A DNA stretch of 64,000 nt, taken from contig OZ076415.1 in NCBI GenBank assembly GCA_964187785.1, positions 1,736,001-1,800,000 of the forward strand. The letters run 5' to 3'. The DNA comes from Amphiscolops sp. MND2022 (lineage: Eukaryota). Shown here in pieces: positions 1,117-52,533 of this stretch. The position numbers and the translations under genes were made by a program. The notes beneath the pieces were generated by a model. The model was not told the DNA's origin. It saw only the letters and a list, made by a program, of their open reading frames with translations, and ran no database searches. Each line of letters opens with the position of its first letter. The stretch's first letter is position 1.

Positions 1117-1124
1117 ATTTGAAC

Positions 1125-5850: not shown

Positions 5851-5863
5851 GAAGAGGGGGGAA
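5851..5863 (+). promoter_or_regulatory. Polypurine tract of element 1
   Basis: GAAGAGGGGGGAA immediately 5' of the 3' LTR. Confidence 0.85.
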
Positions 5864-17318: not shown

Positions 17319-17685
17319 TTTTAGTCGGCGCTTTTCTTTAGAAAAGAGTCGACTATAGTCATGGCTTTTCGTCAATGTTTTTTAAGACCACCTGAACTGA
17401 CCAAAATAGTTCTACAAAAGTTCTACAAATATTATTGCACCAAATTGCACCATTTGGCCCAGCGAACTGAACCAAAAAGGTTTTTCTTGTTTTCCCGCGT
17501 AACATACCATACCGGGCGAGACCAAAGGGTCCCCCCTTTCAGTTTTTTCGGCATTGTGAGACTTTTTTCCGAAAATTTTTTTCATAAAAGAGTCCCCAAC
17601 TCACCAATACTTTGACATATTGAAGTCCTTCTGCTATTTTTGAGCCTTAGAAATGGCGCCGACTTGGGCCGGTCCCGGCTTGTTT
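17319..17685 (+). mobile_element. HINE/DINE-1-like copy e
   Basis: TTTTAGTCGGCGCTTTTCTTTAGAAAAGAGTCGACTATAGTC ... GGCGCCGACTTGGGCCGGTCCCGGCTTGTTT. Confidence 0.8.
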
Positions 17686-20600: not shown

Positions 20601-23186
20601 TTCTAATTGGAATCACTTTTTGTCATTATTTTTCGTTCCTTTTCGATTCAAAAAAATGTCCTTTTGTTTCGAAAATGCTGTCCAGAAATTTTCTGATTCC
20701 AACCTTGCTATGTGGGTTTAAAGCTTTCCGTTCAAATCTGTGTCAAAACTTCTCCATTTTCATGTTTTCCAAAAGTTCAACCATGACAAAGTAAATCCCT
20801 TGACTAAGGATATATCAATTATCTTATTGGCCGGAAACAACAGCGGAATGATTTCGACATTTTGGTATATGAGCTCGAATACTCAAATAGGCTTGTTACT
20901 AACGCACCCCGCTGGGATTTGCGGAAGGGGTAAAATAAAGAAAATGATCTGAGTGTTAATTCATTCGAATTTAGGTCAAGTTTAGTGGTTTCAAAACAAA
21001 AAACTAATAAATAGTTTGCAGCTGATATCATTTTTGGTATATACCGAAAACAGCTCTGAGCTAAAAACCTTTATTTATGTTCTTGGCTTTATTAACCAGT
21101 AAACTAGTTTATGAATGTGCCAGTTAACTCCATGCAAATTTGGTTTTATTTATTTCCCTAAGTCGCCCGAGGCTCTGTCGCAAGTACTTTCGATTTTAGC
21201 ACCAGATTAACATGATTTCTCGCCTAGGTGTCTTAATGTTATTTTATAGAACATGAAATACAATCATTACACATGTTAAAGGAGACAAAATATTGTCGAT
21301 AATCCCGCCGAGGTTTCTAAATTTATTGAACAAGCAAAATCGAACTACTTTGCGGCGAATGAGAAAATTCACGATATCCAAGTATCCTTGGTTTTACACC
21401 AACAGTTTTAATCATTTTAGTCCACTAATTTCACAAAAAAGATAGGCAAATATTATGGACCGATTTTTTATTTAACCCCCGCAGGGGGCAAATGAGAAAC
21501 AGGGTTCAAATAACATTATGTCGACATAGTTTGCGATGGAATTTCGGTCCGATGAAATAATTCTTGTCGACATAGTCCTATTTTTCACATTAATTCGCAT
21601 TCAAAAAAGAAAAAATGCAATAAAATAGGGGCTTGCTTATACAATTGTAGGTTGTTCCGGTGTGAATTTTTGCTTTTTTGTAAGTAAAATATAAAAAAAT
21701 CCGAATATTTTTTGGCTGCAAGTTTCGAAACAACTCTAGAGAAATCCTCTCAGTATTACTAGCCATGTACATTTTTTTCATTCGCTCAAGAAATTTTTTC
21801 AAGCATTAAAATTGTTTTCGTGTTAAAGGGGGATAAGAAACATGGTCTCTTTATGACATTATATCGGAAGCGTTTTCACTGAACGCTGCCGGAGTTGTAA
21901 GATTTCTCCATTTCAGTTTAATTCCTTCAAAATATGAGTCATTTTCGTTTGATCAGCGATCATGGCTTTTCAATTGTTCCATTTGAAGCTTGGAAAAATT
22001 TCAAAATGTGAAGCTTCAAATGAGAAAGCCAACAATACAACGAAGCAATATACGATCTATTCAAATATAGAGCTTCCTTTCATGTTCAAAGATAAAAGAC
22101 TGAAGAATCTCTCAGACTTTAGATGTCAAAAAGCTACGAATATTTACAATTTCATGTGAATTAGATTTAAATTTGGGTTTTATAACTAGTTTCATTGTAA
22201 TTTAGGCAATTGGACTGTTTATAAAATGAAGTTTCCGGCTTTTACCTGGAATATTGTAAATTTTCAAATTTTTCTCCGCTGCTTTTTCCTGCTATTTTTT
22301 GGACCCGTATACCTTAATTTAAATTTATTTCAGATAATTTAATGTAGAATGTCTTAAAAGTTGTATGAAACTGTCCCGAAGCCTGTGTTGCGTTGCAACC
22401 GGGCAAATACTAGGAGCTCTAAAAAAAACGGAACGCACGAAATATTCACTCTTGAAAATTGTAATAATTGTAAACAAGACACTGAAAATCTTTCACTTTC
22501 TCTGTCAATCATCCTTTTATTACGTAATCAAATCTTCACCCTTGCTGAAACTCCTTGCTCTTTCTGAATTTCTTTTATTGTTGTCAACAATATTTTTTAT
22601 GGTTTCCTAAAACTCTTACGCAACTTTCATGCGAAAATATTTCCTTCTTACAATCGACTTTTATGAAGCTCCGGAAAAATTTCACCAGAGCTTTGGCGGA
22701 AATAATTAGCCTTGCTGGTTTCATAAAAAAGCAGCCTGTACTGACAACCCATGGTAACCCACCACTGGCCATCGGTGGCAATTTTTGGATAATCAGTCAC
22801 TATTTCCACCGGTGGTCACCGAATTGTGAATTATGGAAAATTATTGAAAATTATAATTTCATTATGGAATCCGAAGGTATTTAAATTTCCAAAAGCTTAC
22901 TTCTGCACTCAAGAAGTTCTGCGGCAATTCAGACTATTTTGGCACGTCGCGATGTAGGCAATGCTGCGGAACAAATATAGCTAAGGCAAAAAAAAACAAA
23001 TTAGAAAAACTGATAGCGCAGAGGTAAATGCTGGAGTGTCGACAAAATTAATACAGGTTCGCGTCACAATTTTTGCAATATTTTGTATACAACACGAAAT
23101 TTTTCCTCATCGGTGGCAACCGGTGGTCCACCCCTGGCCATCACAAAAAAACGGTTACCCTGGGTTGTCAGCACGGAAGTTCTTAT

Positions 23187-23903
23187 TGTAACGTCTGCCA
23201 CCGGCATGACCAAAATTTCGATGAAAAATTCGAAATGTGCGATGTCAAAATAGAAGAAAAAAGATGGCCGACCTGACAGGTACAAAAAGTGTGAAAGAAA
23301 AAAGAAAACACGCGGAGAGCGAGCAAAAAAAGAGAACACGTGCCGGAGAGACAGCAGAAAAAGATGAAAGAGCAAGAAGATCGAGGAATGTCAGAATGGC
23401 GATTATCGGGAAGTTGTGTCATCTCTTACGAAATTCAACAATTTCAGATGAAGATTGCCAGAGGGATATTCCGAATTATGGCTTGAAACTGTAAAGTAAT
23501 TGGGGTTTGTCCCCGTTTTTCCTTATTATCTTCATAATTCCCTTCGATATTTGAAAGATGTTTGACCTTCAAGGTCATTTTATATCTTATTTCCCAAATA
23601 TTATGTTTTCCAGCTAAATCACTGTTTTGACCTCGGAAGCATGTAGGAACTCGCAGGAGTACATTAGAAACCTTAGGAATGTTTTTACAGGCTTGTGGGG
23701 CGTGTCCGGACTTTGAGAGTGCCGGCGCGTCGCTTCGGAGCTCTAACTAGAGAAGCCTCCTTAGACGTTAGAAAAGTCCCCCTTGGAGACCATTTTGGGA
23801 TCAAAAACTAGTGTCTAGGTATGTAGTAAGACAACGGTCTCCTGTTTAAGCATCCTAGGCATTGTCCCTCTTCCTAGATGTGCGTCGCTAGCCGGTCGTT
23901 ACA
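23187..23903 (+). repeat. 5' LTR of element 3 (717 bp)
   Basis: Direct repeat of 41381-42096. Confidence 0.96.
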
Positions 23904-23919
23904 TCTGGAATAGTTTTTA

Positions 23920-23937
23920 TGGCGACCACAGAGGGAT
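23920..23937 (+). promoter_or_regulatory. Primer-binding site (tRNA-Arg-like), 16 nt downstream of the LTR
   Basis: TGGCGACCACAGAGGGAT is the complement of ATCCCTCTGTGGTCG-CCA, resembling tRNA-Arg(TCG) 3' ends; TGGCGACC is the known start of tRNA-Arg PBSs of 412/mdg1-type elements. Confidence 0.75.
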
Positions 23938-26791
23938 ATTTTTCATATTGCGTACAGGTAGGAGCAACTTCTGCTTTCCGGCCCCGAAGGGTCCAGATCT
24001 AGGAAAACGTTTTGGGAGGGTCCTAGATTATTTATAGCATTTTTCTGGCCCTCTGGGCTTTGTGCTAGTGTTATTCCTGCGTTTTCCCCGTGTTTCTGAG
24101 GTCTACTTAGAGAAATTAACCGTTCTTAACAGTGTACCCCCTTTTTCCTCACTAAAACCTAATAAAAAAGCTATTCCGGCCTATCCGGAACGTTTTTTAA
24201 AGGGTTTTCTAGCTTATTTTCAGCTAATTTGCAATGTATGGGGACAGAGAGGACGAGCGCCGAAGGTTCCCACCAGCTGTGATGACGTGGTGATGTCCTA
24301 CACAACCACTCCTCCCACGCCCCTGTGATTGCAGTACATCACGTCAGACGGGTGAAATCGTCTTTTTTCTTAATTTAACGGCCCAAAAAGAGTATTCCCA
24401 GGCCTATCACCATTATAACTAACTGAGAAAAATACCCATAGGGTATTCCGATCAGTTGTTAAAAAATTTGAGCTCAAAAACCTCGAAAATAACGTTATTT
24501 ATAGCTCAATTACCGAAATTTTCAATTTTGAAAATAAATATTTTATCAAACAGAGTAAGGCCAGTGGGAATACTAAAAAAACGTTCCAACAGACCCTCTG
24601 GGTCAGGAACAAAAAATTTTGCAGGGCCATTTTTCCAAAAATAGCGAAAAATTCAGCAATATCTGTTAAAAAATCGTCAAATTTGGCCATTTTGACCCAA
24701 CTTGACGAGGGCTAAGCCTTGGACACTAGCTCCCAAGCTTCTGAATCAGCCCAAAAATCTTTTTCCCCAACTTGGTAGCACGAAACACTACTACCAAGTT
24801 GTTTTTTAAGGCTCCCCAATAGAAATTGAAACTTTAATAACTTGTTTCTTTTGATATACATAGATCTGAGCAGAGGACCCCATAGACCTGAGCGATATAA
24901 CACCAAAAATAGTAATTGAACGAACCCCAACCCCATAAAATAAGTTGTCACACTCTCCCACAGTACTATTGGAACAATCCCAAACGCCCAAGAACCGATA
25001 AATAAAAATTTCTTGGTGAAAACACGTTATTTCAGTATTGTTCCGAGAGTGTAAAAAGTGCAACTTGAAAAATTTTTGACAGACCCTATTTGGGACCTAC
25101 CAGGTTTCGCTTGCTTATTTTCTGTTAGTATATACCCTAACGTTACAAACGCAGAAAACCGCGAGTGATTCCAACCAGTGGTTGTCGAGAAATAGCCGAA
25201 AACGCGTTATTTTTGCGACATTTTGGGAACCATATAGTAGTGCTTCCAGCACAAGTCGAAATCTCTCCTAGTAGGAGCAGCCTCAAACGGATTGCACCAG
25301 CGTGTAGACCATAAAAAGTTACGTTAGTGGTGTAATTTTCGTAGCGCTAGCATTACTAGTGATTGAGAAATCTTAGCCGCAGTTTTGCTCAAAAATCGTG
25401 TGAAAATGTCGAAAAATTTGAATTTTGGTTGAGCATAGTGCAATACCTCGCAGGTATCCCAACACTAAAATTCTTGCATTTTCGTGCGCACGGCACCAGA
25501 TCACGACGATTTGTGCAATTTGAGCAGCCGGCTACAAGCCAAAGCTGAGAAATTGACATTTTTGTGAATTTTGACCCGAAAAAATGGTACCTCTAGTACA
25601 TCAAGGTTTTGTCACTTCATATTGCTAGAAATTGATCAAGGCACCTCGCCGCTCTGTTTTTCTGTTACATGGGCACAAGTTAAGCTCACATGCAAGATTT
25701 CAGGTAGCTAGGAAGCCTAGAAGACGAGTTTGACCACTTTTTGCGAATTTCGTGATATAGTCAACTTTTCAATGAACATTGCTAAGTGACCGTAACACCC
25801 ACAGGGTCAATTTCTGTACAATCGGCGTTCAATTTCCCATGATTCAGCTGACGTAATATATGGTGTGAAATATTCAAGTCGCTACGAGCTCTGGAAGTGA
25901 TTTTCACCCTTCTCAGACGTGCCGATTGACGACAAATTTGCTAATTTGGTGAAAATTGAATAGAGAACAGCCCCCTTCCAGTCCCCAACAACCAATGTAA
26001 GGTCTTGAAAATAACTCTTCAATACAAGGAGCACTTCCCACGCTCCCAATAGAGCCGCATCGACTGCAATAGCAGTACTCCCAAAACTCACGGCCTCCAA
26101 AGAACTCACTCTGCTGACAAAAAAAAAATTTGGACACCCCAATACCGAATTTTCTAAAAAAGTAAAACAGTATCCCCATTAGCTCAACAGCTTTAATTCA
26201 AATCGCCTTCCTAACTAAACCCTTTCTTTCGTACCAATCCCCGAATCCTTTTCCAATCCTCCATTCCACTGTACCCGAATCAGAAAATTGAGAAAACTTA
26301 GTGAGTGACAAGTTCGTCCAACCGAAAGAGCGCACTGCGCTTAAAGCATATTGACCACTACCATTCATCCAAATAATCAGCCACCCACAATATTGATTAA
26401 AGCTCAATAGGCAATTCCATTGCCTATTCCAAAGTGAATTAGTAAATAAAACGTAAATAATCAAAAAAAAATAATTTTTAGTTCCCCTCCACTCAGTGGA
26501 CAGTCGAAACGAAATTTTCAGTTAAATGTTAGTATTTAGAATTAAACTAGCCCTCTTACCAAAGCTAGTCCTAACCTTTTTGTTAACCTCAATTCTGTAG
26601 TCGCTCCCTGCCTATAGCGACCACATACGTACAAACAAAAAAATTTTTTTTAGAAAAATCAACAACCAACCTAAAATCATCTCCCATCCTTTCTTAGGAG
26701 GGAAGGGTGAGACAAAGAAATTAAAAATTCCTTATTCAAGAATTCCCCTTTTCGTTTACAACCAGAACCCATACGCTAAAAATTGACCAGA

Positions 26792-29700
26792 ATGAACAGG
26801 AACCCTCCCAAAAGTTTCCATGCCACCAATCCATTTGGCAATATAGCGAGAGATGCAACCAGTTGGGAGACTCTTACTAACAGTTCTCCTGAACCTACCA
26901 TTACAGACATGTTTTTAGAATTCATGTCTGACTACATCCCCAGCACAGATCAAAACACGGAGATGACAACCGCAGCAGAACAGCTCGGTTCGTCGCAAGC
27001 TTCCCCTGACAGTACTCATCCAGTGGATAGTACAGGAAATACTACGCGAAGTAACGCGTGGCCCCCTCTAGAAGTCACCGACTATAGCCTAGAGGAATGG
27101 CCCAACTCAAATAAAAAAACCCAAAATGAAATAAGTGCTGCCGAAGAAACGGCATCACAAAATAGTAATCACTCAACTCCTGTGGCGGCCCCCCGCACTC
27201 CTTTGATTAAAAAGAACCCGCTGGGTTCCCACGCACCAGATATTAACACAAATCGAAACGATCAGAACCCCTTTCTAAGCGGATACGCACAAAAAACAGG
27301 GCCATCTACGGCACCTGCCCAGCCAAACGACGATCAACCAACACAAACGGAAAATAACCCATTGAGGTATGTCTTTAGAACACCTCCATCTAGAAACTTA
27401 GATCTTGCCCCAAGGCGAATGGACAGATTAGATCATACCCCTAATTCCAGAACCAGTATGGAAACGGCCCCTGACTCGACCGTTACGAAAGTCACGAAAG
27501 AGTCCCAAGCAGTAAGGGAAGAATTTCGAAACAGCCTGGCTCAGCTATCACAAGTACATTCACGACTGTCACGAGAAAATACTGAGCATGTAATAAGGGC
27601 TGATGTCATTATGAGAGACATGGATGAAATGAGGAAAGGCCTGCTAGAAATACAGGCCGAAGGGCGTCAAAGCCAAGGAAGACTGGAAGCATCCATGGCT
27701 TCTCTCAACGACTTAATAAAGCAGAGGGAAAGCATAGCAGACACGCGCATGGCCGAAATGTCCGCTGTGATGAAAGAGAGAGACCGTCAAGCAGACGAAC
27801 GGATGAAAATGATGTCAGATCTCATGCAGCGTAGAGAAACCGACGCAAACACCAGAATGATAGACTTGATGACCACGATGAAGGATTTGACGCTTGGAGT
27901 AAGAGCGATGGCAGCCCAAACTGCAACAACTCAAACAAAAGTAATGCCAGTGGCGTCGATGATCTCAAATTCAGACGGATACCCCTCCACTAGCGCAGCA
28001 CCAAACCCAACGCAAACTGCTTACCGCAAGGTGGCCCAGTCCAACGCCGAGCAAGCAAAGCCCTTGAAGCTGATACCACCCGCAACCTACAAAAGGGACC
28101 TGCCACGAACTAACAAAATGGCAAGAGTGATAACAGAGTCCCGCGACGTGGGCACGGACCCATTAACCAGCATCTCATTTGATCCGTTTGCTCGCGGTGC
28201 ATCAACAACGGGAGATTATTACTCACCCGCAAGCGGTATGACCACAAGGGAATCAAATTACCATACTGCTAGGACGAACGTCAGTGAAAATTCCCCCAAA
28301 CAAGCATACCTAGACTTGATCCCGCGGCCAGTAGCCACAAGTACACAGCGAAAATCCACAACGAAAAGAAACCTAGAAGAAAATAATGACGAAATCGAAC
28401 AGCCTTCAGAATCGCCAAAAGCAACGCCAGACACCCCAAGAACTAGCCAACGACAAGCATTGGCGGAGGCGATCTCAACTGCTATGTCCAAAGGCTTGGA
28501 ACCGTTACTCGCGGCGAAAGAATCGAAGAATAAACCCACAAAGTATCGAGGGACCAAAGACGGAAACGCCGACGGGTGGATGATGCTGATGAAGCGCCAC
28601 TTGGAGAAGGCACACACCAGAGCTACTCCTCTCGACAAGGCCTGGACCATAATAGAGTACCTGGAACATGAGGCCCGTGACTACATCACTAACAAATCCG
28701 AAGCGGAAAGAGACACCGATGAAAAAGTCTTTGCATTGCTGGCACGACGATTCGGAACTGGATCAAGCAAGATCCATATACAGCAGCAGTTCCGTACACG
28801 CAACCAAAGCAATGAAGAAGACTACATGCAATATCTCGATGCTCTCGAAGGCCTGCGCAGTCAAGGCTACCCCAACGAAGAGGTTACCGTTCGCAGATAT
28901 GAGATAATGCAAAAATTCATCGAGGGTGTACGCAACTTTGAACTCAAAAGGAACCTCGCCTTAATGTATGCGCAAGAACAGTATGTTGAAGCACCTCCAA
29001 CGGTAGAAGCGCTTCGCTTCACAGTCCAACAATACCTGCGCATGCGTGGTTCTAACCGCTCAGACAACTACCAAATGCCCCAGCCTCAACACCCTCAGCC
29101 TCAACAACCGAATCAACAACCGAAATTGCCTCAGGCAATTCCACCGCCGATACCGCAACCCCAACAAATTCCACCTCCACAACAACTAGCACCCTACCGA
29201 CCACAACCCCAACGAGCATGCTTCAATTGTGGGGACCCATCACACTTCGTAATCGATTGCCCACTCAAAGACCGTGCACGGAAACCGGTACAGCAACAAG
29301 TAAATTCTTGTCACACCAACCCCTCCGGTGGATGGACTTGTCCATCACAACCCCACGGAGTGAACAACGAAGTGTACCCAGCATCCCTACCAATCCAAGG
29401 AACTGTAGCTTTCTGTGTCAATTGTGGATGTGCCGAACATTCCGCATCGGAATGCATATCCCCAGAATATCCCAGACAAGAAGAACAAATAAGGGCAGCA
29501 TGGTATGCACCGCACACCAATCAATTCGAAGGCGCATCACAGGATGATCAAGTCAGAGTAATCTCGGTAGCAGAGGCCGGAGGCCCTTCCCGTCCTGTCG
29601 TCATTACTTGCGGCGAAAAACAAGTGCTTACCACATTGGAAGCACCCGCCCCCGACTGCACCGAGACACTCATCTCCATACACTTACTTCTCTCGGCTGA

Positions 29701-30883
29701 ACAAAAAACACGTCCTGAATTGACGTTAGCGCAATTAAAAGAGGAGCTATGCAGAAATTCCAAGTATACTATCGCAGCTCGACCGCTACCGCATTTCACC
29801 CGAGAGGACGAGACAAAATTGGCCCCAATACAGAAAGTAAAAACAATTTCCCCAGTACCGGTAGCCATTAATGTAGACGGGGTCGACATGAAATTTGACG
29901 CCATCGTAGTGGTAGAAGGTTACTTCCCTCAGGGATTATACTTAGGTCGCCAGGAGTTGAGATGTTATAACATTGGAGTACAAGACACTCAAGGGGAAGC
30001 TAGCATCGACGAACGAGCTTCTTTGGTAGTTGCCTTTGGCAGCAACCTCCAAGAGTCCATTCCCTTGTATGGTATGATTGACACGGGTTCTGGTGTTTCT
30101 ATCCTCTCCCTTGCAGCGTACCAAAAGATTGCTTCCGCCCATTCGTTGAGCCTCATGCCGTACGACATCCACTTATACGCAGCAAACGGCAAAACAATAA
30201 CGACGGTCGGCATGGCAGAAAACGTAAATTTCCAATTGGGCGGCCACTCATTGAAGACTAACTTCATCGTCATTGCTGATCACTTAGGGGCTGAAGACTT
30301 CCTGTTAGGACGCAACTTCTTACGCACCTATAATGTCCTCGTGGACTTGACCGCCATGAGGGTCACCATCAGGGACCCAAAAACTCCACGCCATTTCAAA
30401 CCAATCCATGAGGTTAGTGACCATGAACCTTCCTTAGTAGTGTCCACCGACAAAGTTGTACTAGGACCTTTCGAACGCAAGTTAGTTAGAGCACAAGTCA
30501 TCACTCAAGATCCCAATGAATATCGTTTCCGTAATGTAATGATACGCCCCAGCGGGGTGTACAACCGAAGTTCCTTTGTTTCAGAAAACACCCTAACTTC
30601 GGTGGGAGACGATGGCACGATATACATGGCCGTAAGAAACAAAACCGCCATTGAAAACTTACAAATTTATAGTCGAACTCTCCTAGGCAAGGCAGAGCCT
30701 ACCGTTTTTAAGTTTAGACCGATTCCGGTCGACCAAACCGATAGAACCTCTATGCCTCTGATAGAACAAGTTAATAATATTAATATTGTTGATCTTGACG
30801 ATACAAGCAGTGAATTCAGTTCTTTCGCACAAAACTTTTTATCATCTACTGAGTTGTCCGAAGAGGATATGTCAGAAAATTAA
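26792..30883 (+). CDS. Gag-protease part of element 3 polyprotein (first ATG 26792)
   Basis: Coiled-coil region; capsid-like segment (PTKYRGTKDGNADGW...RRFG...FRTRNQ); two CCHC knuckles (29219-29260, 29414-29455); aspartic protease IDTGS (D at 30080) and LLGRNFL; dUTPase-like beta segment before RT. The stop at 30881 is in frame with RT. Confidence 0.92.
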   Translation: MNRNPPKSFHATNPFGNIARDATSWETLTNSSPEPTITDMFLEFMSDYIPSTDQNTEMTTAAEQLGSSQASPDSTHPVDSTGNTTRSNAWPPLEVTDYSLEEWPNSNKKTQNEISAAEETASQNSNHSTPVAAPRTPLIKKNPLGSHAPDINTNRNDQNPFLSGYAQKTGPSTAPAQPNDDQPTQTENNPLRYVFRTPPSRNLDLAPRRMDRLDHTPNSRTSMETAPDSTVTKVTKESQAVREEFRNSLAQLSQVHSRLSRENTEHVIRADVIMRDMDEMRKGLLEIQAEGRQSQGRLEASMASLNDLIKQRESIADTRMAEMSAVMKERDRQADERMKMMSDLMQRRETDANTRMIDLMTTMKDLTLGVRAMAAQTATTQTKVMPVASMISNSDGYPSTSAAPNPTQTAYRKVAQSNAEQAKPLKLIPPATYKRDLPRTNKMARVITESRDVGTDPLTSISFDPFARGASTTGDYYSPASGMTTRESNYHTARTNVSENSPKQAYLDLIPRPVATSTQRKSTTKRNLEENNDEIEQPSESPKATPDTPRTSQRQALAEAISTAMSKGLEPLLAAKESKNKPTKYRGTKDGNADGWMMLMKRHLEKAHTRATPLDKAWTIIEYLEHEARDYITNKSEAERDTDEKVFALLARRFGTGSSKIHIQQQFRTRNQSNEEDYMQYLDALEGLRSQGYPNEEVTVRRYEIMQKFIEGVRNFELKRNLALMYAQEQYVEAPPTVEALRFTVQQYLRMRGSNRSDNYQMPQPQHPQPQQPNQQPKLPQAIPPPIPQPQQIPPPQQLAPYRPQPQRACFNCGDPSHFVIDCPLKDRARKPVQQQVNSCHTNPSGGWTCPSQPHGVNNEVYPASLPIQGTVAFCVNCGCAEHSASECISPEYPRQEEQIRAAWYAPHTNQFEGASQDDQVRVISVAEAGGPSRPVVITCGEKQVLTTLEAPAPDCTETLISIHLLLSAEQKTRPELTLAQLKEELCRNSKYTIAARPLPHFTREDETKLAPIQKVKTISPVPVAINVDGVDMKFDAIVVVEGYFPQGLYLGRQELRCYNIGVQDTQGEASIDERASLVVAFGSNLQESIPLYGMIDTGSGVSILSLAAYQKIASAHSLSLMPYDIHLYAANGKTITTVGMAENVNFQLGGHSLKTNFIVIADHLGAEDFLLGRNFLRTYNVLVDLTAMRVTIRDPKTPRHFKPIHEVSDHEPSLVVSTDKVVLGPFERKLVRAQVITQDPNEYRFRNVMIRPSGVYNRSSFVSENTLTSVGDDGTIYMAVRNKTAIENLQIYSRTLLGKAEPTVFKFRPIPVDQTDRTSMPLIEQVNNINIVDLDDTSSEFSSFAQNFLSSTELSEEDMSEN

Positions 30884-33800
30884 AAACGCGCGCAAACAGA
30901 CCCGAACCTATTGAAACCAATACCAGGCCCAGATCTGTCCTCCGTCCTTTCTTTTTGGGGGGAGGGAGCGAGAGATCAATTAGCAGAAGTTTTGAACGAG
31001 TACGACGACCTCTTTATGAAACATAAGGCCGACATAGGAAAGTGTACGATAGCAAAACATCGTATCGAATTGGAATCAGAAGCTATCCCCCACAGGGAGG
31101 GCGCAAGGCGAATGTCACCAGACAAAGCCGCCAAAGCCAACCAAGAAGTGAGGAACCTCTTAGCATTAGGCTTGATCCAACCTTCCTACTCGCCTTGGGC
31201 TAGTGGAATAGTAATGGTGAAGAAGAAGACAGGTGAACTTCGCTTCTGTTGCGACTTTAGACCGCTAAGTGACGTAACAGTAAAAGACGCCTTCCCCCTT
31301 CCCAGAATAGACGAAAGTCTGTCTAGGATAGGTAACGCAAAAATCTTCACAAGCATCGACATAGCATGGGCCTTTTGGCAAATACCACTGAAGAAACGCG
31401 ACAGAAGGAAAACAGCATTTGCCTGTGAATTGGGTTTGTTTGAATGGCGACGTATGCCCTTCGGGCTATGCAATGCATCCGCCACCTTCAAACGATCCAT
31501 CACAAGAGCACTTCAAAAAATCCAACAAAGACACGGAAGTGTCGTCATGGCCTACATCGACGACATAGTGATTGCAACTGAAACAATTGAAGACCACATA
31601 ATGAGGATTAAAGAAGTATTTGAATGTCTCAGGGAGGCAGGCTTTAAGATGCGAGCGGAAAAATGCGACTTCATGCGCACAGAAACCAAATATCTGGGAC
31701 GGATAGTATCAGCCGATGGAATCAAGCCCGACCCAGAAGCAGTGACCAAAATCCAAGAGTGGTTGCCACCAAGAAACAAAGAAGAACTCCAAAGCTTCTT
31801 AGGGTTTGCTAACTACTATCGCGATTTTGTCCCATTCCACGCCTCCAAAGTGCAACCCATGCAGGAATTGCTAAGGAAGAATCAACACTTCGGCTGGGAG
31901 GAAAGACATCAAGAAGCCTTCGACTCAGTGAAACAAGCCTTGTCCAATGCCACCACCTTGGCTGCACCAAACGAACAAGGACGGTTCGTGCTAGATACAG
32001 ACGCCAGCACGGTAGCTATTGCGGGTATTCTACATCAAGAACAAGAAAACAACGGCAAAACTATCCTGAGACCAATAGTTTACGGTAGTAAATCACTGAC
32101 CAAAACCCAACTGAACTACGGCGCCCCCAAACTGGAGATGTATGCAGTATTTTACTTTGTAGAGAAATTCCACTCATACCTAGCAGGTCGAGAGTTTACG
32201 CTTCGCGTAGACAACCAAGCTCTTTCATGGCTCAAAACCTACTCCATGGACCAAGCCATGATTGGCCGTTGGATCGCACGTCTAGACCAATATCATTTCA
32301 AAACAATTCACAGACCGCGTACGCAACACCGAAATGTCGATGGACTAAGCAAACGCACCAACGTTTGCATTAATCGCGAACAAATCCTTGAAAAGCTACC
32401 AGAGGTAAGCGAAGGATTTAACTTCATGTCACAAAAAGACTATGATGAACTCCCCACCGTCCCATACATCGACAAACGTGGTCACCTAATCCCAGACCAC
32501 CCTGAACTCCCCCAGAAGCTAAAGCTCGACTACCTCTGCTATACATCCTTCAGAAGAAGCGAAAGAACAATCAGCCTAACGAACCAACAGGAGATATCCC
32601 CTGGTATCCCGAAATTCAATGGGAAACCACACCGACTATGGAAGAGGATGAGCGACCCAATCGAATCTTGAGCATAACCACAAGAGTGCCTCCGGCACGA
32701 ATAGACACAACAAAGCCTGACCCGACCCTGGGGACTCTGCCTCTCGAATGTCAAAAACAAAGCTGACATTCTGAGAACCATTGAAACCGAATTGCACGAA
32801 CACCATCTAACCAAATATGGCCTCCGAGACCTACACATGGCGCAGAACAGAGACGTACACCTATTGGCACTAAAGAAACTCATGAGAAATGAGCCATTAG
32901 AAGAACCTATGTTCCCAGATGAAGTACAAGACTTCGCCAAAAGATACTACCATCAAAAGAAAGACCTGCTATTCTTGAACCCTGATGACATACTCTGTGT
33001 CAATTACGTTCCCCAGCAACGTGCCCTGCACGTACGCCCATGCATGATAATCATGCCGCAACTTTTCCAACACGAAATCCTGTACAGAGCACACGATGAA
33101 TCGGGACATCAAGGCGTAGGAAAAGTGCTGGCCAGAATACAAGAACGGCACACTTGGCCGGGAATCAAGAGGGACGTAGTAAATCACATCAAGCAATGCT
33201 TGACTTGCCAACAAGCAAAACACCCAGCGGGAAATCCTTGCTACCCCCTGCAGAGCATTAATAGTAGCAATTTCAACGACCTAGTTCAGTTCGATCATTT
33301 GAAACTCTGCAAGACCGACTCGGGCAACACCGGTCTTTTGGTAATAGTAGGTCATTTTACCAAATTTGCAGAAGCTGTCCCCTGCGCTCACGACGAATAT
33401 GACGCACAAACCACCGCAAAAATAATCCTGAACAAATGGTTTGCCAGGCATGGCACTCCTGCAAGGATGCAATCGGATAATGCAACTAACTTCACCGCTG
33501 AAATCGCCCAGGAATTAATGAAAGCCTCTCAAGTCACCAAAGTTACGTCTACCCCAGCACATCCCAGAGGAAATGGACTCGTGGAGCGCCAGAATCGAAC
33601 TTTGCTCACTCTCCTCCGAGTCTACACCTCACGCAGAATGCAAGACTGGGACGAACACATTGATGGAGTTCTGGGCGCATACAACTCCAGCAGACATGCC
33701 ACTACAGGGTTCTCACCCTACATGCTCCATCATGGCGCAGAGAAATCGATACCACTCTCGTTTATATACCCAGAGTTCGCAGCGCGAGGCTTTGATTCCA

Positions 33801-36401
33801 AAGAAGAGTTCGTTGAACACCTGTTGGCCAGACAACAAGAAATCCACGAATTAGTTCGAAGAAATACGCATCAAGCTCAACTTCGACAAAAACTAAAATT
33901 TGATCGTCACCTCAAAGCAAAAGCGCACGCCGTAGGCGACGCTGTCTGGGTATTTTGTCACATAATCCCCAAGGGCGGCACTCGCAAGCTTATACGCGCT
34001 TGGCGCGGACCCCACAAGGTCACCAACGTACTACAAGATGGACGTCTCTACGTGCTCGACACAGGTCAAAAAGTTCACTACGACAGACTAAAGAAACATG
34101 TACCAGCCCCCTGGGACTGGACCACTTACCAACCATTCGGACTAGATCAAAATGTAGCTATCATTGCTGATCCATACGTGGAAGACACTAACGAAGAAAT
34201 CACCTCCGACATCTCTAGAGACTCTCCTTTCTTCCAGAACAGCTCCCAGAGGCGTCGTTCGAAATGGAACCCACGAGACCGGTCCCCCCCGTACCATCCA
34301 AACACGAACACAAACTGCCCTAGGACAAGGGGTCCCACGCAGGAGATTCAGCCAATTCGACTACCCATCCGAATCAGACTCCGAAGCCGAAGCGGCAGAA
34401 CCTTCCCCCATGACCCCTCCCTCCCAAGTAGTATTCCCCGAAGTCGATGATCTAGAACCATTATTTTCCGACCAAGATGAAATACTGCCACCAACGCTCA
34501 TCGAAAGTTTAATACCATTACCTTCAGGAACTTCAGCTCCATTACTCTCCAACCCCTCGCTCACAGACACCTTGAGCAACTTTCCTTTGTTTAACCAACA
34601 AACAACGCACCCCAACGACCCGACTGATCCCATTCAGGCCACTGAGCCACTGGAAAACAATGACGGACCTGACCACCAAATCGCGAATCCAAATCCACCG
34701 CCTACAACCACCACAAGGGGAGGTCGACCTCGAGGTAGACCCCCTGCTCGCCGACACCAACTACCCACATCATCAAGCAAAACCACCACGTCTTCCCGGA
34801 AACCAACCACGCGGCACAGGAGAGGCCCAAGAACCAGGTTTTCTTCTAGAACCGCGCCCAGAACGCTTGACAGAGCCATGACTCTTCCTCATATTCCAGA
34901 GAGTTCATCCCCTGCTCAATCACCCCAACGTGATGATAATTCTAGACAAGCGCCACGCTACCAACTCCGAACCAACAGAGCACCGAAATATAAGTGCGGA
35001 ACCTGTGGTTCTCGTAACTGTAGTTGCGTCCAGCTAGTCACAACAGAAACCCCAAGACAGCGACTGGCCCGGGGAGCGGCGATTCCGGACTACGAGTTCC
35101 TCTTAGCACAAACAGCGAACCACCCACAACACAAAATCCTCAATGTACGAACAAAATTACATAATTCCAATATCACACCAACCGTCCGACATATCATTTT
35201 AACAATCGAAAAAACTTTTACCACTACCGAATCTGAATCCATACCACCCTTGGAATCCACCCTGAAGGAAATGCACCGATTCTCCCCCTCTGATTGCCCA
35301 ACCTATCGTTTCAAAGAGTGGACTTCTCATGAAAAAGGTGGACTTGAATTCACGCTAGCAGCAATCATTCCCCCTCTACCCCCCTCGTTTTCATTTGGTG
35401 AATTAGATGATACCTGCAGTAACCCCCTAATGATCCGCTGCATAACCGCAAACCAACTATGGCAGAAATATCACATCACTTCCCCACCAGGTGATATATA
35501 TCAACCATCCACTGGATGGTGGCTTCTAGTCACTTCCCTTGACGACTCATCATTAGTCTCACCAACTACATTATTGTTATGCCTAGAAAACCTACGCACC
35601 CTCGTAGAGTCGAACGACACCTTATGTTTTCATCTAGCTGACATTTACCGCGACACATTCTTGAGCCAACATTGGCTACAACTAATAGCCATTGTTTTCT
35701 GCAGACAAACGAAAATATGCATTCTCGACCGCTTAACGTACACGCTCGAAATACCTATTTCTCCCTTAGAAGCACTCTCCGTAATGCACAGATGGTCGTG
35801 CGTACATATGGGCAACCGCCCCCTACGTCGTACAATATGGAACGATCGCAAATCAATTTTCGCACACTTGATGTTGAACCCCCTGGAGAATCACGCAGAA
35901 GAAACTGGAAAATGGCTCATCTCACAACCAAAGATTCGCCCAAGCCACGTATCATGGATAACTTACTCCGACACGGACATCCTGCAAGCCTCTGGCACAT
36001 TAGTATTGTGCTGTCCTGCAGACCTCCAATCCCAATCAGCAACTATTCGATATATTATTCGCGAATATGGACAAGAAACTATTTTCCGTCTAAAACCTTC
36101 GGTTGGCACAGCCACTTGCTTACAGTACTCCCACACGGCACCCTGGTACAATCAAATCTTCCTCCTATACACCAGAGCCTCCACCAAATACCCACTACTA
36201 CATGAGACCCTACACGCATGCCTCAACCATCTTCGGCATCAACTCCACCAACACCAAATTTCCCGAGTCCACATACCCATCTATGACCCCGAACGATCGA
36301 TCAATCTCATTCCAACTTGGTACGCCACGCTCCGGGATCACTTCTTCGGTTCAAATCTTGAGATAGTACTCCACGATAGAGTCTACGTTTCTATTGCATA
36401 A
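30884..36401 (+). pseudogene. pol of element 3: RT-RNase H-integrase plus long C-terminal extension with tandem macrodomain-like folds; frameshifted
   Basis: RT (RFCCDFRPL, MPFGLCNA, YIDD 31553-31564); RNase H (LDTDAS, LRVDNQAL); integrase HDESGH..CLTC, QFDHL, QSDNA, GNGLVER, WRGPH; frameshifts at ~32513, ~32761, ~34225-34290; extension ORF 34164-36401. Confidence 0.92.
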
Positions 36402-36774
36402 ATTTCTTCCTTTGACATCCCCACAGATTGAGTTTTCATGATTTAAAGGGCCAGAGGCCCGCCCTCCTTTTTTTTGTTTTCTAAAATCCACCCCCATTTT
36501 TCTCGTTAACTTCCTTAATACGTACAAAATAGTCCGTAAAAGGTCTTCTTTTTTTAAACGACTGCACTCTATCTAACTACTAAACTTTTTAACACTCACT
36601 CTGTCATTTTAAGTTTTAACTTTTAGTTTTCCTTTCTTACCACTTCTAATATACCCTGTTCATGTGCCACTTGATTTTCAGTTTTGTCCTGTTGCTTCGC
36701 CCTTGCGCAGCCTCCCTATATCACACCATCACCCTCTTTCATCCATATCCACTTATTCCCTATCTGTGCTATCA

Positions 36775-39700
36775 ATGGATCCTTCATCGCGTAATCGCAT
36801 GCCTGCTCCCAATAGCCAACAGAATCCCCAATCTCGTATTCCTTCTTCTAACACTCTCCAATCAATGGGCGAGGTTAATGGCCGAGTCGACCAACTAGCC
36901 TTAGTCCAGCAAGCTTTACAAGATGGGGCCACCCCCACCATGATCACTGGCTTTGCCATGATTGTAGCGCAGATGCAAGCGCAAGCTACGCACCCAGAGG
37001 TCTTATTGACCATTACAAGTAGCATTGGACCGCTTGAGCGTTCCGCTACCTTCCGCGATGGTGTTTGCCATGGTTACGATTTAACTCATAACCTGATCGA
37101 CCATCGCTCCCATATGCTCTACGGAGAACCTGACGGGCCTCCTATGGACCAAGAACGATCGTTCAGAATTTCTCCCCCAACAATACAGCCAATCTTCCAC
37201 CCAACACAGCCTGCCCCATCTCAAACTATGATACAGCTTCCACCCCCCGAGACTACAACCTTCAACTGCACTTTGCCTCAAATGCTACCTCCAATCCTCA
37301 CGCCACCTATGCCTCTGGCATCTGTGGGTATCAACCCTCCCACTCTCTCTACTCCTGCCTTTATGCTTCCTTCCGCCTTTCAGGGGGGAGGGGTGCAAGG
37401 AGTGCAAGCAAATCCCATCGAATGCAATCAAGTGACACAAGAAGAAGCCAACAACACTCGCCCAACGAGAAAAGTCACATTTCAAAAAGAAGAGCAAAAG
37501 AAAGAAAGAAAGGATAGAAATGCTCCAATGGATCTCCGCGATAAGTTGAATGCAACGAAGAGAGCTAGAGAGCAAGACGGGCAAACCAACTCAAACAGAG
37601 GAACTCCAGCCCAATCCCCTAGCCAACCAGAAGCCAGGAGACAAAAAGTCACGAGAGAGTTACTAACTGCGGCAGAAATGAAACAGTTGGATATTACAGC
37701 GAGAGACGCACTGCGTCTTCAACGCGAAATACCAAATATGCCTGACGAAGAAAATCCCCCCAAGACAGAAGTTTGCGAGCGCTAACAGCAGAGGGGACCA
37801 AACCACTCAGCGAACTATAGAGAAGGCCAACATTGGAGTAGTTTACAACCGACCAGTTAAGCCACCAATATTCGCCAATGATGGAGGAGTCCCACCATGG
37901 TTCGAGCGTCTCAGGAGAGAATTGCAGAACAGCAACTCCACGTACTTACAACCGCTCCAAGCAACCAACGATCGACTCGCTCGCCAGAGACCCGGCAGAT
38001 TCGGAGAGAACCACCTACAGTCAAAAAACTACGCGAGGAACCCCATCACCCTACTACCAATGGGAAAAGATTTGCTACAGAAAATTAGGATTGCTCTCTT
38101 CGTTGACTCAACCATCAAGTCATCGTATAATGGCAATAACACCTTGATGGACGTTAGACTAATGAATATGCCTTGCACAACGCTTAATGAAATGGCAGAG
38201 GTAACAGACAAAATATTCACGCCAGCGGGGACAGAAACGATACCTCTTCCACCAGTCTTGGTGTATTCGAATGTGATTGATCACCTCGCCCTGCGAGGAT
38301 CATTGCGACATTTCGATACACAAAGCAATCGATTTACCGAAGGCTTCGTCACCGACGAAGTCACGGCCTACATAGAAACAATGTCCTACTTTGTTACTAC
38401 ATTGAAAAACAAAAAACCGAACACCGCAACAGTCTTCGTCTCACCCCCCGGGTACATTTATATCCCAAGAGCACTGCAACAATTCTTATATTTAGTGCTT
38501 GAAGCAGCTTATGCAAGAGACCTCCACTTCTACATTGTTGCTCCAAATTTAAGAGTTAGCGTAACCACGTGGCGCCCCTGCGAGGCGTCGTATCCAGCCT
38601 TTTTGGCAGAGGTGTCCAAAGCCGTCCAGGCATTCACAGGATATCGAGGCAATTCACAATTGATTGTCGACGAAGCAACCGCGTACGACTACGGAATGCA
38701 GATGTCTATCCGATCCCTAGACGAAAACGGTGTACGCAAAGTGTTCGACCCGAACGAGAACGAGAGAAAACACCTAATCGATAACCTCTGGTTTGAAAGA
38801 AGGGATGAGTCCACTCTCGACGAAAAAACACATGAACCAAAATTCCACAAAGAGCTCCTAACTCTTTTTAAAGAAACTGAAAAAGTTAAAACAGAACGGA
38901 CCAACACCACCGTATTTCCCATGGCGGCTATATCTACTGATGCTAAACTTGATATGGCGTCTCTCACTTTGACGCTCTTGACAGTAATGACAAGAGGCTT
39001 GGCAAGACAAAATGAAGTAGAACCAAGCCATACCTATCAAACTTGGCACAAAGCCCTACATGAAACCTTAAATCAAGTCGCCCTGCGGCTAGAAATCCCA
39101 TTTCCTGTGTTTCTTTATAACATTTCCCCCTTTTGGCTCCCGAGTTTTGTTCAAGCCGAATTTAATCTTGATGATCAACAGACGCGGTTATACCAGGAGG
39201 CAATGCAAAAAGCCACCATTAGTGAAATTCTAGCTTACTTAATGGCGGTCGGAATGCACACAGTGTATAAAGGACCCTCTGGGATTCTGCAAAAACTAAT
39301 CTTCGACAAGGGACATCTACCACTCTTCAGCTACTTGGTATTCTCCCAAAGCCAAAAGAACTGGTTACAAGCAATCTTGAACGCCTTGGACCCAGCGGGT
39401 CCTCTACGATTAAAAAGACAACTGGAACTAAACATCGAAGCTATTCTAGCATGGATTTACTCAACATGGGTGAATGTCGCGGGTATCATGCATCCTCTCG
39501 ATGAGAACCCAGCCATTAACAGAGAACCAAACCAGCTCCCTGGCTTCCTGTTTCCTTCACAAATGGCAACCCTTATGCTGGTAGAAACAGAGGACGTGAT
39601 GCCCCTAATTGCCCCAATAGTCTGGCCAATCTTTGGCGCGGTCATGGCTCTAAGGTACCCCACTCAGGTCTTGCGCATGGCAGTGAATACCCCCACCCTT

Positions 39701-40816
39701 TCCATACTGCATTTCGTGATGGCAGATGAGACCCTAGCGGAACCGACTTACCGCAAAGTGGTAGCCAATTTCAGCTCGATGCGACCGCCCATGGCTTATA
39801 CAATTATCAAGGACAAAAAACAGGTTGAGCACAATTTTACTTCTATCATAAAAGCACGTGCACGCTGCGCCCTCCCGATGCCAATGGAATTTCACCCAAT
39901 TGCATGGCTACATATCCCCCTAAATCCAGCAACAGGAGCAGCACATTCCCTTACGGATTGAAACTCAGAGATAATCCTGAGGATTCTAGCCACTGCAAGC
40001 CAAAGATTGGGCGGAAGGCGACGAGGTGAAGAACCCAGCGGGTTGAGATATCCCTATGTGTGTGATGCCTCAAGGATGTACTGCGACCGAACCAACCCTC
40101 GCGCGCACCCATCGGATATACTACAGGCAACAACGTGCTGGTCGAAACCAGACTTAGTAGATTTTGCAGTCCACCAGACTTCTCAGCACATAAAAGCCAA
40201 GACGCCCTCAGTAGCAAAAGAGCCAAACAGAAAGACTCTACCAATCAATACAGAAGTCCCAAATAATCCGCGCGCTGCGCTAGAGATATTCTTGAACCTA
40301 CACAGTAGACAAAAGGAAAAAGGGGATTCTGTTGGAGAAGAGTATGCACGCGGAATCCAGACCTTCAAAAGTTTGTTCATTCAACATGGCTACCCAGAAC
40401 TTGCCAACAAACTACCTGAATTCCCACAGGGAAACATCATCGAACAAAGCAGTGCAACGAATACAGCTGCCCCTGGCAGCTCACAGCAAGAGACACCCAG
40501 TGAATTGCCCGCGGAAAGAATGGAAACTCGAATGGAAGAAGACCAAAAGAATCAATCCATCGTCATTGAGACTCCTGATGAACCTATGACAGATGATAAC
40601 TTCACTCTATCCGACGGTGCAACCCCTACTCAAGACGAACCCGAGACAGGAATATCTCAAATGGATGCTGCTGATATCGAATCTGAGTTGAACAACCTAC
40701 TCACCATCGACGATTCGATACAATATCCTCCCTTGGTGGCGGAATCTTCAATAAACCAAGATTCAGCAATGACATCCTCCGTTTCGGATTCACAACAAAG
40801 CCAAAACGATGAGTAA
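36775..40816 (+). pseudogene. Accessory ORF of element 3 (reconstructed ~1,346 aa) with SGNH/GDSL-like domain
   Basis: ORF 36664-37785 (ATG 36775) joins ORF 37922-39961 (frame open from 37667) by removing one C from CCCCCC 37756-37761; ORF 40007-40816 is in the same frame after a single TGA at 39959; SGNH-like blocks at 38090-38636. Confidence 0.7.
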
Positions 40817-41371
40817 AAGAATAACAATCGACGCTGAGCCGTTCAATCTGAAAACGAAAACTTGCCTTTGAATAGACAGGACTTTACCCCAATGGTCTTA
40901 GACCATTGCATTTTTGTTGGTGCTAAGACACTGAATTGCAAAGTAATACCTATTATCTACTTAAATTTTAGTTCATCTGCATCATATGGGTGGGCCCTGA
41001 GCCAGTGCCCACCCTCTCTAGTTCGGTAATTAACCATTGTTACCAAGACTTGAATTTTGTTACCTGGAGAAGTGCTAGAGCACCTCCTAGAAAAAAGATT
41101 TTAATCTGAGTTTGCGAAATTGCTTACAAATTTTGAGATTGTCAATCATAAATTTTAGTTTTGTCCAGTGAATATTTTTAGTTCTCGCTAAGACCAATTG
41201 ATACTAATATAAGGAAATAACAAAAGAAAAATTTGGAGATTGAAAGAAAGCAAGTAAGGAAAAAACAAAACCTTCCTAGGATGTTCAAAAAAAAGAGAAA
41301 AAATCTCAGCATTGCTATCACCCTCTGGGTATTAGCATCCTTTCGTTTGCCGAGGACGACAAACTACGGCC

Positions 41372-41380
41372 CGGGGAGGA
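41372..41380 (+). promoter_or_regulatory. Polypurine tract of element 3
   Basis: (C)GGGGAGGA immediately before TGTAAC of the 3' LTR. Confidence 0.75.
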
Positions 41381-42096
41381 TGTAACGTCTGCCACCGGCA
41401 TGACCAAAATTTCGATGAAAAATTCGAAATGTGCGATGTCAAAATAGAAGAAAAAAGATGGCCGACCTGACAGGTACAAAAAGTGTGAAAAAAAAAGAAA
41501 ACACGCGGAGAGCGAGCAAAAAAAGAGAACACGTGCCGGAGAGACAGCACAAAAAGATGAAAGAGCAAGAAGATCGAGGAATGTCAGAATGGCGATTATC
41601 GGAAAGTTGTGTCATCTCTTACGAAATTCAACAATTTCAGATGAAGATTGCCAGAGGGATATTCCGAATTATGGCTTGAAACTGTAAAGTAATTGGGGTT
41701 TGTCCCCGTTTTTCCTTATTATCTTCATAATTCCCTTCGATATTTGAAAGATGTTTGACCTTCTAGGTCATTTTATATCTTATTTCCCAAATATTATGTT
41801 TTCCAGCTAAATCACTGTTTTGACCTCGGAAGCATGTAGGAACTCGCAGGAGTACATTAGAAACCTTAGGAATGTTTTTACAGGCTTGTGGGGCGTGTCC
41901 GGACTTTGAGAGTGCCGGCGCGTCGCTTCGGAGCTCTAACTAGAGAAGCCTCCTTAGACGTTAGAAAAGTCCCCCTTGGAGACCATTTTGGGATCAAAAA
42001 CTAGTGTCTAGGTATGTAGTAAGACAACGGTCTCCTGTTTAAGCATCCTAGGCATTGTCCCTCTTCCTAGATGTGCGTCGCTAGCCGGTCGTTACA
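41381..42096 (+). repeat. 3' LTR of element 3 (716 bp)
   Basis: About 99.4% identical to the 5' LTR. Confidence 0.96.
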
Positions 42097-43298
42097 TATT
42101 TTATCAGCAAAGAGCTTGTTATGAGTTTTATCGCAATTTTAATGCAAAATAACTTCAGTCGCGTAATAAACTGCATATTATTGTCATGTTTAGACCCTAT
42201 TTGAGACGCGGTGATCACATCATCTGAGCAGTTGACGAAACAAAGTGTAAATACAAAGTGTGATCGTGTCGGTAATGAAATGGGATTTAATTTTAAATTG
42301 TGCAACAAATTCAACCGTGACCTTATACTAAATTTTCTACATTTTAGTTTTAAAATTTTCCTGCATGCAGGCGTGCAGAATGTAAAACTTACCAGCAGTC
42401 TCAACTATGGCAACCAAGAGTGATCCGATTCTTCAGACAACAATCAGACGTCTCTCTTTCAGTCATTTCGTTGACACTTTTGACGCGTGAAAGTTCATTT
42501 TCTTCGAAAAAATAGTTGTCAAAGTGAATGATTTACAGTCTGAATTGAAATGTTCCGAATTGTTTTAGAACATTTGTTGACAAATTTTGAGAACTCAAAA
42601 GTTTTCATGTGTTCCGTTTTTTATGGTTCACTTAGTTTGAAATAGTCAAATGAAAGATTCAAAAAGGCAAAATTCACAGATGAAACGATTATATTCTAGA
42701 ACAGTAGATATATTTTTTTCTGTCACTGAAGCCAAAAAGGTTTTTTCACGTTGCCACTGTGAATTTTCAGCGGTGCAACCCAAATTGACGGAACAAAGTC
42801 TTCTTAGCAATGTTTTCAATTTCAGTATTTTTTCCAGCAACGAAATCTGGGGAAACTGAAATTTGATGACTTTGTGACCAAGTTGAAACTACAATTGTTT
42901 GAAAAAATACATGCAAAAGCTTCTCATCTGAACAATTATTTCGAGTTTCAACCAAATGAAGAAGACATAGAATCGTTTGGCGACAGTTGTAAAAAATCTT
43001 TATTTCGAATTAAATCGAAATTTTGGGCATTTGAGTTTGAAGAATGTATTTCAATTGATGTAATTAGATGGTAATTAAGCGAAACGAGCTTCAATCTTGA
43101 CTGATAATGAACATGGTCAAGAGCTGATGAAAAATTCGAGAGGAGATATTATGTCATGATAGCCACAAAAATCAATTTGACGGAAGAAGACCAAAACACG
43201 CACAAAAGTTAACAGAAAACTGCAAAAAAGTCACAAGTGATACTTTCAAAAAAAAAGAGGACACCTTTGATCAAAAAACTGTGTCAACGGTACAAAAC

Positions 43299-43490
43299 TG
43301 AAGTAACGTGGAGAAACAAGAGGATAAATACAGTGAATTTAAAAGCTAGAGCGTAAGTATCAAAACAGATCAGTATCGTATATATTTTCAGTGTGTCCAT
43401 ATACGCATTAACGTTACATGACATCTAAAAGTGGCAGGTAGTTCAATGTTCACTTTAATTGGATTGTTCATTTTGCCATTTCATGCCACA
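43299..43490 (-). repeat. 3' LTR of element 2 (192 bp)
   Basis: Direct repeat of 48993-49185; shares block TTAA..TGAACATT.AA.TACCTGCC with element 1 LTRs. Confidence 0.93.
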
Positions 43491-43621
43491 TTCCCTTCTT
43501 CCGGGATCTCCTAAGGGAGCTATTTTTGTTGTGGGTTGTCCTTCTTGATTCGTGGAAATGGGGTGAATGGGAATCGACCTGGAGTGGTGAAAGTGTAGGC
43601 GTCTCCTAAACGTAAAAGGTT

Positions 43622-48957: not shown

Positions 48958-48992
48958 TGTTTTTCTTTCTGTTCAAGATGCTGACTGCGCCA

Positions 48993-49185
48993 TGAAGTAA
49001 CGTGGAGAAACAAGAGTATAAATACAGTGAATTTAAAAGCTAGAGCGTAAGTATCAAAACAGATCAGTATCGTATCTATTTTCAGTGTGTCCATATACGC
49101 ATTAACGTTACATGACATCATGAAAGTGGCAGGTAGTTCAATGTTCACTTTAATTGGATTGTTCATTTTGCCATTTCATGCCACA
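48993..49185 (-). repeat. 5' LTR of element 2 (193 bp)
   Basis: TG...CA termini, PBS adjacent. Confidence 0.93.
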
Positions 49186-52095: not shown

Positions 52096-52533
52096 CATAG
52101 AAATGGATCGGTCAGCTTTTGATGTTAAAAAATGCGGACCATGTGTCTTATAATCACCCCCAGTGGCCGCTTGGTAGGGGGGTTATAAGACATGTAACAT
52201 TATTATAAGGGGGGTCAGAAGATTGTCTTTACAGCTGTTTTGACACTTCCAATAAAACATGACCCTAATGTTTCGATTTTATAGTCCAAAATAGCAAAAT
52301 TTTGTATAGAAATTTCTATACAAAATTTTGCTATTTTGGACAATAAAATTGAAACATTAAGGGTCATGTTTGCTGGAAGTGTCAAAACAGCTGTAAAGAC
52401 AATCTTCTGACCCCCTTATAATAATGTTACATGTCTTATAACCCCCCTACCAAGCGGCCCGGCCACTGGGGGTGAATATAAGACACATGGTCCGCATTTT
52501 TTAACATCAAAAGCTGACCGATCCATTTCTATG
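52096..52533. repeat. 438-bp near-perfect palindrome with no spacer
   Basis: Arms 52096-52312 and 52313-52533, centre GAAA|TTTC; few mismatches and one 5-bp duplication in the right arm. Confidence 0.92.

Follow-up and report, generated by a model that had tools for sequence, protein, structure and literature searches.

Giant Ty3/gypsy-type retrotransposons from the Amphiscolops genome and related metagenomic loci are flanked by 3-bp target-site duplications

We analyzed a 64,000-nucleotide stretch of the genome of Amphiscolops sp. MND2022 (contig OZ076415.1 of assembly GCA_964187785.1, positions 1,736,001 to 1,800,000, forward strand; hereafter the window). It contains a Ty3/gypsy-type retrotransposon of 18,910 bp with long terminal repeats (LTRs), which we call element 3 (23187-42096, + strand). 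Element 3 and seven related insertions carry target-site duplications (TSDs) of 3 bp, perfect or nearly so. The simplest explanation, which we hold to be very likely, is that the integrase of this lineage makes a 3-bp stagger, which would be the shortest seen in its enzyme class. Each transposase or integrase family is taken to have a nearly constant duplication length, which serves as its signature, and 4-6 bp is assumed for LTR elements. A natural integrase that cuts 3 bp apart would extend this range and could be compared with enzymes of 4, 5 and 6 bp for which intasome structures have been solved.

Three insertions of the lineage lie in the window: element 3, an older solo LTR of the element-3 family (the host solo LTR), and a solo LTR of a sister family that interrupts the latter (the nested solo LTR). 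Their features are as follows.

23184-23186, + strand: left TSD copy of element 3, TAT
23187-23903, + strand: 5' LTR of element 3, TGTAAC...GTTACA, 717 bp
41381-42096, + strand: 3' LTR of element 3, 716 bp
42097-42099, + strand: right TSD copy of element 3, TAT
58002-59469, - strand: host solo LTR, in two halves (58002-58294 and 59039-59469)
58295-59038, - strand: nested solo LTR

The two LTRs of element 3 are 99.4% identical to each other and their homology ends precisely at TG and CA. The nested solo LTR is flanked by TTG on both sides (58292-58294 and 59039-59041). The host solo LTR is flanked by CGC (57999-58001) and CAC (59470-59472), a match at two of three positions with one CpG-type transition. 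The flanking triplets of the three insertions, with their positions, and the terminal letters of element 3 had been given in an earlier reading made from the letters alone (the sequence-only reading), as had the claim that none of the three insertions shows a 4-, 5- or 6-bp match at its LTR edges, and on re-analysis both proved correct.

We then turned to relatives of element 3. Its reverse transcriptase (RT) open reading frame (ORF) has more than 1,600 relatives, and the best 120 comprised 119 from ENA and one from JGI. The relatives used here are 12 loci (L001-L012), 11 of them from the ENA metagenome assembly ERZ25074608 and one, L010, from ERZ25071366. Dispersed repeats of the window recur in a flank of L007 at 80-92% identity, so ERZ25074608 derives from the same organism or from a close relative. 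No flank pair was scored for L002, L005, L006, L008, L010, L011 and L012, each of which is without one end. A further metagenome scan yielded 80 loci, mostly of 1-5 kb and too short, and a scan of viral contigs gave one irrelevant match. Eight insertions could thus be scored, with the LTR ends placed by the limits of homology between 5' and 3' LTRs, the adjoining polypurine tract and a perfect 6-bp terminal inverted repeat.

Element 3 (window): LTR family A, 18,910 bp, LTR identity 99.4%, TAT/TAT
L001: LTR family A, 21,552 bp, LTR identity 93.5%, CCT/CCT
L003: LTR family A, 19,567 bp, LTR identity 99.7%, AAC/AAT (1562-1564 and 21132-21134)
L004: LTR family A, 17,340 bp, LTR identity 93.1%, ATG/ATG
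L007: LTR family A, 5' LTR internally truncated, LTR identity ~94% (first 148 nt only), TTT/TCT
L009: sister family (RT ORF 66% identical), 3' LTR without its first 58 nt, LTR identity 97.7%, AAT/AAT
Host solo LTR (window): family A, solo, CGC/CAC
Nested solo LTR (window): second sister family, solo, TTG/TTG

Between the nested solo LTR and the 3' LTR of the L011 element, identity is 93%; the RT ORF of the L011 family is 68% identical to that of element 3. Because the set includes L009 and the nested/L011 family, the 3-bp trait covers at least three LTR families, with RT ORFs ~66-68% identical. By the test that the sequence-only reading had set itself, duplications of 4-5 bp in most copies of the family would have spoken against it. 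The five further complete copies, at independent loci, have 3-bp repeats instead (three perfect triplets and two with one transition) and a repeat of 4-6 bp is present in none of them.

Read at a length of 3 bp, five of the eight pairs are perfect and 21 of the 24 positions match. With the base composition of the window, the binomial probabilities of these counts are ~9e-8 and ~5e-10, respectively. When left and right flanks were re-paired at random, 75 and 15 of 200,000 trials, respectively, came up to the observed counts; this test is conservative because some shuffles retain true pairs. At most two of the eight fit any other length (3-6 bp) or an offset of up to 2 bases in either direction. 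The triplets might nevertheless be chance matches or relics of eroded 4-6-bp duplications: three of the eight pairs are imperfect, and the original three cases (two perfect, one matching at two of three positions) would by themselves be a thin basis. However, the agreement is confined to three positions, positions 4-6 of the flanks match at background level, and none of the eight copies has a repeat of 4, 5 or 6 bp. In the young copies, with LTRs 99.4% and 97.7% identical, the repeat is a clean 3-mer that extends no further. The three mismatches are, without exception, transitions, consistent with the decay of genuine duplications. We therefore regard chance or erosion as extremely unlikely.

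The duplication could also appear too short if the LTR ends had been drawn one base too wide, the real TSD being 4 bp long and including the terminal T or A. If the initial T of the LTR is assigned to the target, TATT is obtained for element 3 and TTGT for the nested solo LTR. Such a 4-bp repeat fits only two of the eight insertions, whichever side is considered, as expected from base composition. Moreover, the LTR ends of the lineage form a perfect 6-bp terminal inverted repeat to which this T and A belong, and the T follows the polypurine tract, which abuts the 3' LTR, in every 3' LTR. A misplaced boundary is thus very unlikely. The hexamer TGTAAC occurs 33 times in the window, where 30 are expected; it is not enriched and so is relevant solely as an LTR terminus.

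Are the triplets created by insertion? We compared two insertion sites with homologous uninterrupted sites, in each case with the pieces aligned apart and never joined. The right flank of element 3 (42100-42299) matches a repeat at 50778-50971 at 75-81% over 200 bp, and the left flank matches the same paralogue farther upstream. The triplet is present once in this paralogue.

50775-50777, + strand: single triplet of the paralogous uninterrupted repeat, to which both TAT copies of element 3 map

The sequence-only reading had proposed this paralogue as an empty site. The site is real, but its left side is weaker than had been assumed: the left anchor is just 4-8 nt, because an element of ~440 bp with inverted ends (~22736-23175) sits 11 bp to the left. 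The second site is that of the nested insertion. The halves of the host solo LTR, aligned separately to the intact LTRs of L007 and L004, overlap by exactly the duplicated triplet, and both intact LTRs carry this triplet once. No further empty sites emerged when the flanks of the remaining copies were compared by BLAST with the DNA of this analysis.

These sites bear on the idea that nothing is duplicated and that the elements favour places where a triplet already stands twice, entering between its copies. Some targets do contain short repeats: the L004 element is inserted inside a tandem 11-mer (ATGATTCATCC / ATGATTCATGG, at 2771-2784 and 20125-20139), which at first sight mimics a far longer flanking repeat. 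Yet both uninterrupted sites carry the triplet once, and the eight triplets have no sequence in common. Targeting of pre-existing repeats can hardly be credited on this evidence.

The ~440-bp element beside element 3 (~22736-23175) is bounded by terminal inverted repeats of 22 nt that are 91% complementary, contains another inverted pair internally, and is missing from the paralogue at ~50.77 kb. It looks like a miniature inverted-repeat transposon, and its own duplication may be 2-3 bp (CAG/AAG).

Two shorter gypsy-type elements of the window served as controls.

897-6069, + strand: element 1, 5.2 kb, TSD TATTT at 892-896 and 6070-6074
43299-49185, - strand: element 2, 5.9 kb, TSD AAAAC at 43294-43298 and 49186-49190

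The 5-bp TSDs that the sequence-only reading had assigned to both are indeed present. Elements 1 and 2 lie in opposite orientation, are 71-82% identical in their internal regions and have a TGGCGCAGTCAGC-type primer-binding site adjoining the LTR. Their integrase is 24% identical to that of element 3. Outgroup gypsy elements from metagenome contigs, scored alike, have TSDs of 5 bp (L083) and 4 bp (L072).

The presence of the 3-bp trait across at least three families, with 5 and 4 bp in unrelated gypsy elements, points to the elements' own integrase and not to host repair. In the proposed mechanism, the integrase attaches the two CA-3' termini of the DNA copy to phosphates of the target that are staggered by 3 bp, and gap repair then leaves a 3-bp direct repeat. 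The earlier suggestion of a 3-bp-stagger integrase thus gains support, with the stagger itself still inferred from the footprints. Since the footprints are what the stagger is read from, an ordinary 4-5-bp stagger could in principle be hidden by organism-specific host repair or end processing that shortens the footprint, and a 12-16-nt spacer before the primer-binding-site-like motif of these elements (see below) hints at unusual end processing. However, elements 1 and 2 have clean 5-bp TSDs in the same window, so host repair does not shorten footprints generally. Host shortening is therefore very unlikely, and a 3-bp stagger of the integrase remains our preferred explanation.

Several observations weigh against a 3-bp stagger. 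The sample is small, with eight insertions from one organism or close relatives. The L003 triplets are mismatched (AAC/AAT) although its LTRs are 99.7% identical, which makes simple decay unlikely; recombination between two copies, homogenisation of the LTRs or imprecise joining would be needed and are possible. L009 lacks the first 58 nt of its 3' LTR. The stagger is deduced from footprints rather than from enzymatic or structural evidence, and the tools used here linked no part of the integrase sequence to the length of the duplication. A broader proposal, to which we would give only slightly better than an even chance, is that a whole clade of giant Ty3/gypsy elements has moved to a 3-bp stagger, equal to that of the bacterial IS3 relatives and shorter than any other known from retroviral-type integrases, together with an unusual 12-16-nt gap between U5 and the primer-binding site (PBS) and three clade-specific genes. 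If so, duplication length can evolve among the Ty3/gypsy integrases, and the clade would be a natural case for studying what determines it.

What kind of element is element 3? Between its LTRs we distinguished the following features, the protein domains being Pfam matches.

23904-23919, + strand: T-rich spacer after the 5' LTR, 16 nt
23920-23928, + strand: PBS-like motif, TGGCGACCA
23929-26779, + strand: leader, ~2.9 kb, without a long ORF
26783-34450, + strand: gag-pol in one reading frame, with 4 internal in-frame stops and 0 frameshifts
~29213-29263, + strand: CCHC knuckle
~30011-30376, + strand: protease (aspartic)
~31217-31702, + strand: RT
~31895-32293, + strand: RNase H
~33056-33223, + strand: integrase H2C2
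~33275-33694, + strand: integrase DDE core (rve)
34164-36401, + strand: ORF X, 745 codons, overlapping the end of the integrase ORF
36664-37785, + strand: ORF Y, 373 codons
37922-40816, + strand: ORF Z, in a single frame with 1 internal in-frame stop
41373-41380, + strand: polypurine tract, GGGGAGGA, 8 nt, abutting the 3' LTR

Element 3 shares with Ty3/gypsy elements the order protease, RT, RNase H and integrase in pol, the CCHC gag, an integrase with H2C2, DDE and GPY/F modules, and the polypurine tract; its TG...CA ends fit the TGTNR pattern of gypsy LTRs (PMC2836005). It differs from them in its 3-bp TSD (4-6 bp is typical of the group, not strictly defining), in the lineage's size of 17-21.5 kb, in three extra ORFs and in a gap of 12-16 nt between the LTR and the PBS-like motif. 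In relatives of element 3, the protease and RT ORFs overlap in different frames. The leader between the PBS-like motif and gag holds no ORF of at least 100 codons and is unusually long for an LTR element. Element size also varies within the lineage. L001 contains an internal tandem duplication (1230-7833; 3.3 kb twice, 97.9% identity), as does L011 (1668-5974; 2.2 kb twice, 98.5% identity), and these duplications account for part of the variation.

Among solved structures, the integrase ORF of element 3 matches chain 7q5b of Ty3 Gag-Pol best (E 9e-29). In alignments to 7q5b and to solved integrase chains, the D, D-35-E residues fall in register, as does the GP(Y/F)-type aromatic position. Judged by its sequence, the integrase is an ordinary H2C2-DDE-GPY/F enzyme. 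No chromodomain was found in element 3 with Pfam, and it is not classed with the chromoviruses. DNA transposons that duplicate 3 bp (PIF/Harbinger, CACTA, Zator) were considered and rejected, as the ends of element 3 are 700-bp direct repeats around RT and integrase. The same identity was rejected for the solo copies, both of which match LTRs of full-length elements.

A footprint of this length has a counterpart among bacterial insertion sequences. In the IS3 family, duplications are 3 bp long except in the IS2 and IS407 subgroups (PMC10045372). IS3 transposases are, like the integrase studied here, DDE enzymes akin to retroviral-type integrases, and the two groups share TG...CA ends and, for part of IS3, the 3-bp footprint. 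IS3 elements, however, are bacterial DNA transposons without reverse transcription, and the likeness is one of mechanism and not of membership. The Ginger1 and Ginger2 DNA transposons share a gypsy-type integrase and TGTNR termini with our elements (PMC2836005) but they end in terminal inverted repeats instead of LTRs, lack an RT and duplicate 4-5 bp.

In size and extra ORFs the lineage is reminiscent of Burro of planarians, Ogre of plants and Vesta/Juno of bdelloid rotifers, which are oversized gypsy-type elements with added ORFs downstream of or around pol (PMC6431247, PMC5408684). Vesta and Juno are reported to carry a captured ORF3, and Vesta a GDSL-lipase-like ORF. The lineage described here differs from these elements in that its ORFs X, Y and Z have no recognisable domains.

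The three ORFs lie in the region 3' of the integrase, which is ~6.5 kb long in element 3. None of them has a match in Pfam or a sequence match in the PDB, and in these two comparisons no recognisable env was found among them. One hydrophobic segment is present in ORF Z and none in ORFs X and Y. The AlphaFold model of ORF Z is unusable (mean pLDDT 34). Among 5.8 billion proteins, ORF Z has 67 relatives, some in clusters of 210-240 members, and they are confined to this lineage. All three ORFs are common to the element-3 family, the L005 family and L009, and the shorter L011 family has ORF X alone. The common anatomy of the lineage consists of LTRs of ~700 bp with TGTAAC...GTTACA ends, a TGGCG-type PBS-like motif 12-16 nt past the 5' LTR, a CCHC gag followed by protease, RT, RNase H and integrase, up to three lineage-specific ORFs downstream of pol, and a polypurine tract adjoining the 3' LTR.

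The L010 element, from the other ENA sample, has an integrase 48% identical to that of element 3 and shares the GTTACA LTR end and the spacer layout. A GDSL-lipase/esterase-like ORF lies 3' of its pol (16302-17918), as in the rotifer element Vesta; BLASTP found no counterpart of this ORF in element 3. Further relatives, at 38-53% identity, occur in metagenome contigs of GenBank.

The layout of spacer and PBS-like motif seen in element 3 is repeated in related families. Every family of the lineage has a TGG-type motif (TGGCGACC or TGGCGC) 12-16 nt past the LTR, after a T-rich spacer, and this is the only TGG-type motif conserved across the families. In ordinary elements, element 1 of the window included, the PBS lies 0-2 nt past the LTR. 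The sites in the lineage are as follows.

Window: 23904-23928
L009: ~4356-4400
L010: 2880-2900
L012: ~3966-3996

Were the motif the true primer site, a long stretch beyond CA would have to be trimmed from the DNA copy. The analysed DNA holds no tRNA genes with which to compare the motif, and complementarity of the leader to the LTR, as for self-priming, did not exceed chance 8-mers.

Elements of this lineage, with sizes of 17-21.5 kb and three ORFs without matches, are previously undescribed, and they appear to be present in hundreds of copies. By default, widely used LTR finders look for duplications of 4-6 bp, so that elements with 3 bp would escape them, receive wrong boundaries or be discarded as false. 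Full-text searches of the literature found no description of an LTR lineage with 3-bp duplications. A range of '3-6 bp' for LTR elements is given in passing in PMC10045372, and Repbase-style curation takes 4-6 bp to define the ends of LTR elements, for example in PMC10886601 (2024).

Among the flanking ORFs of the window, the only match was a weak one to a SET domain, and Rfam gave none. Elsewhere in the window, at 52210-52415, lies a near-perfect palindrome of 206 bp, made of two 103-nt arms that are 89% complementary and joined without a spacer.

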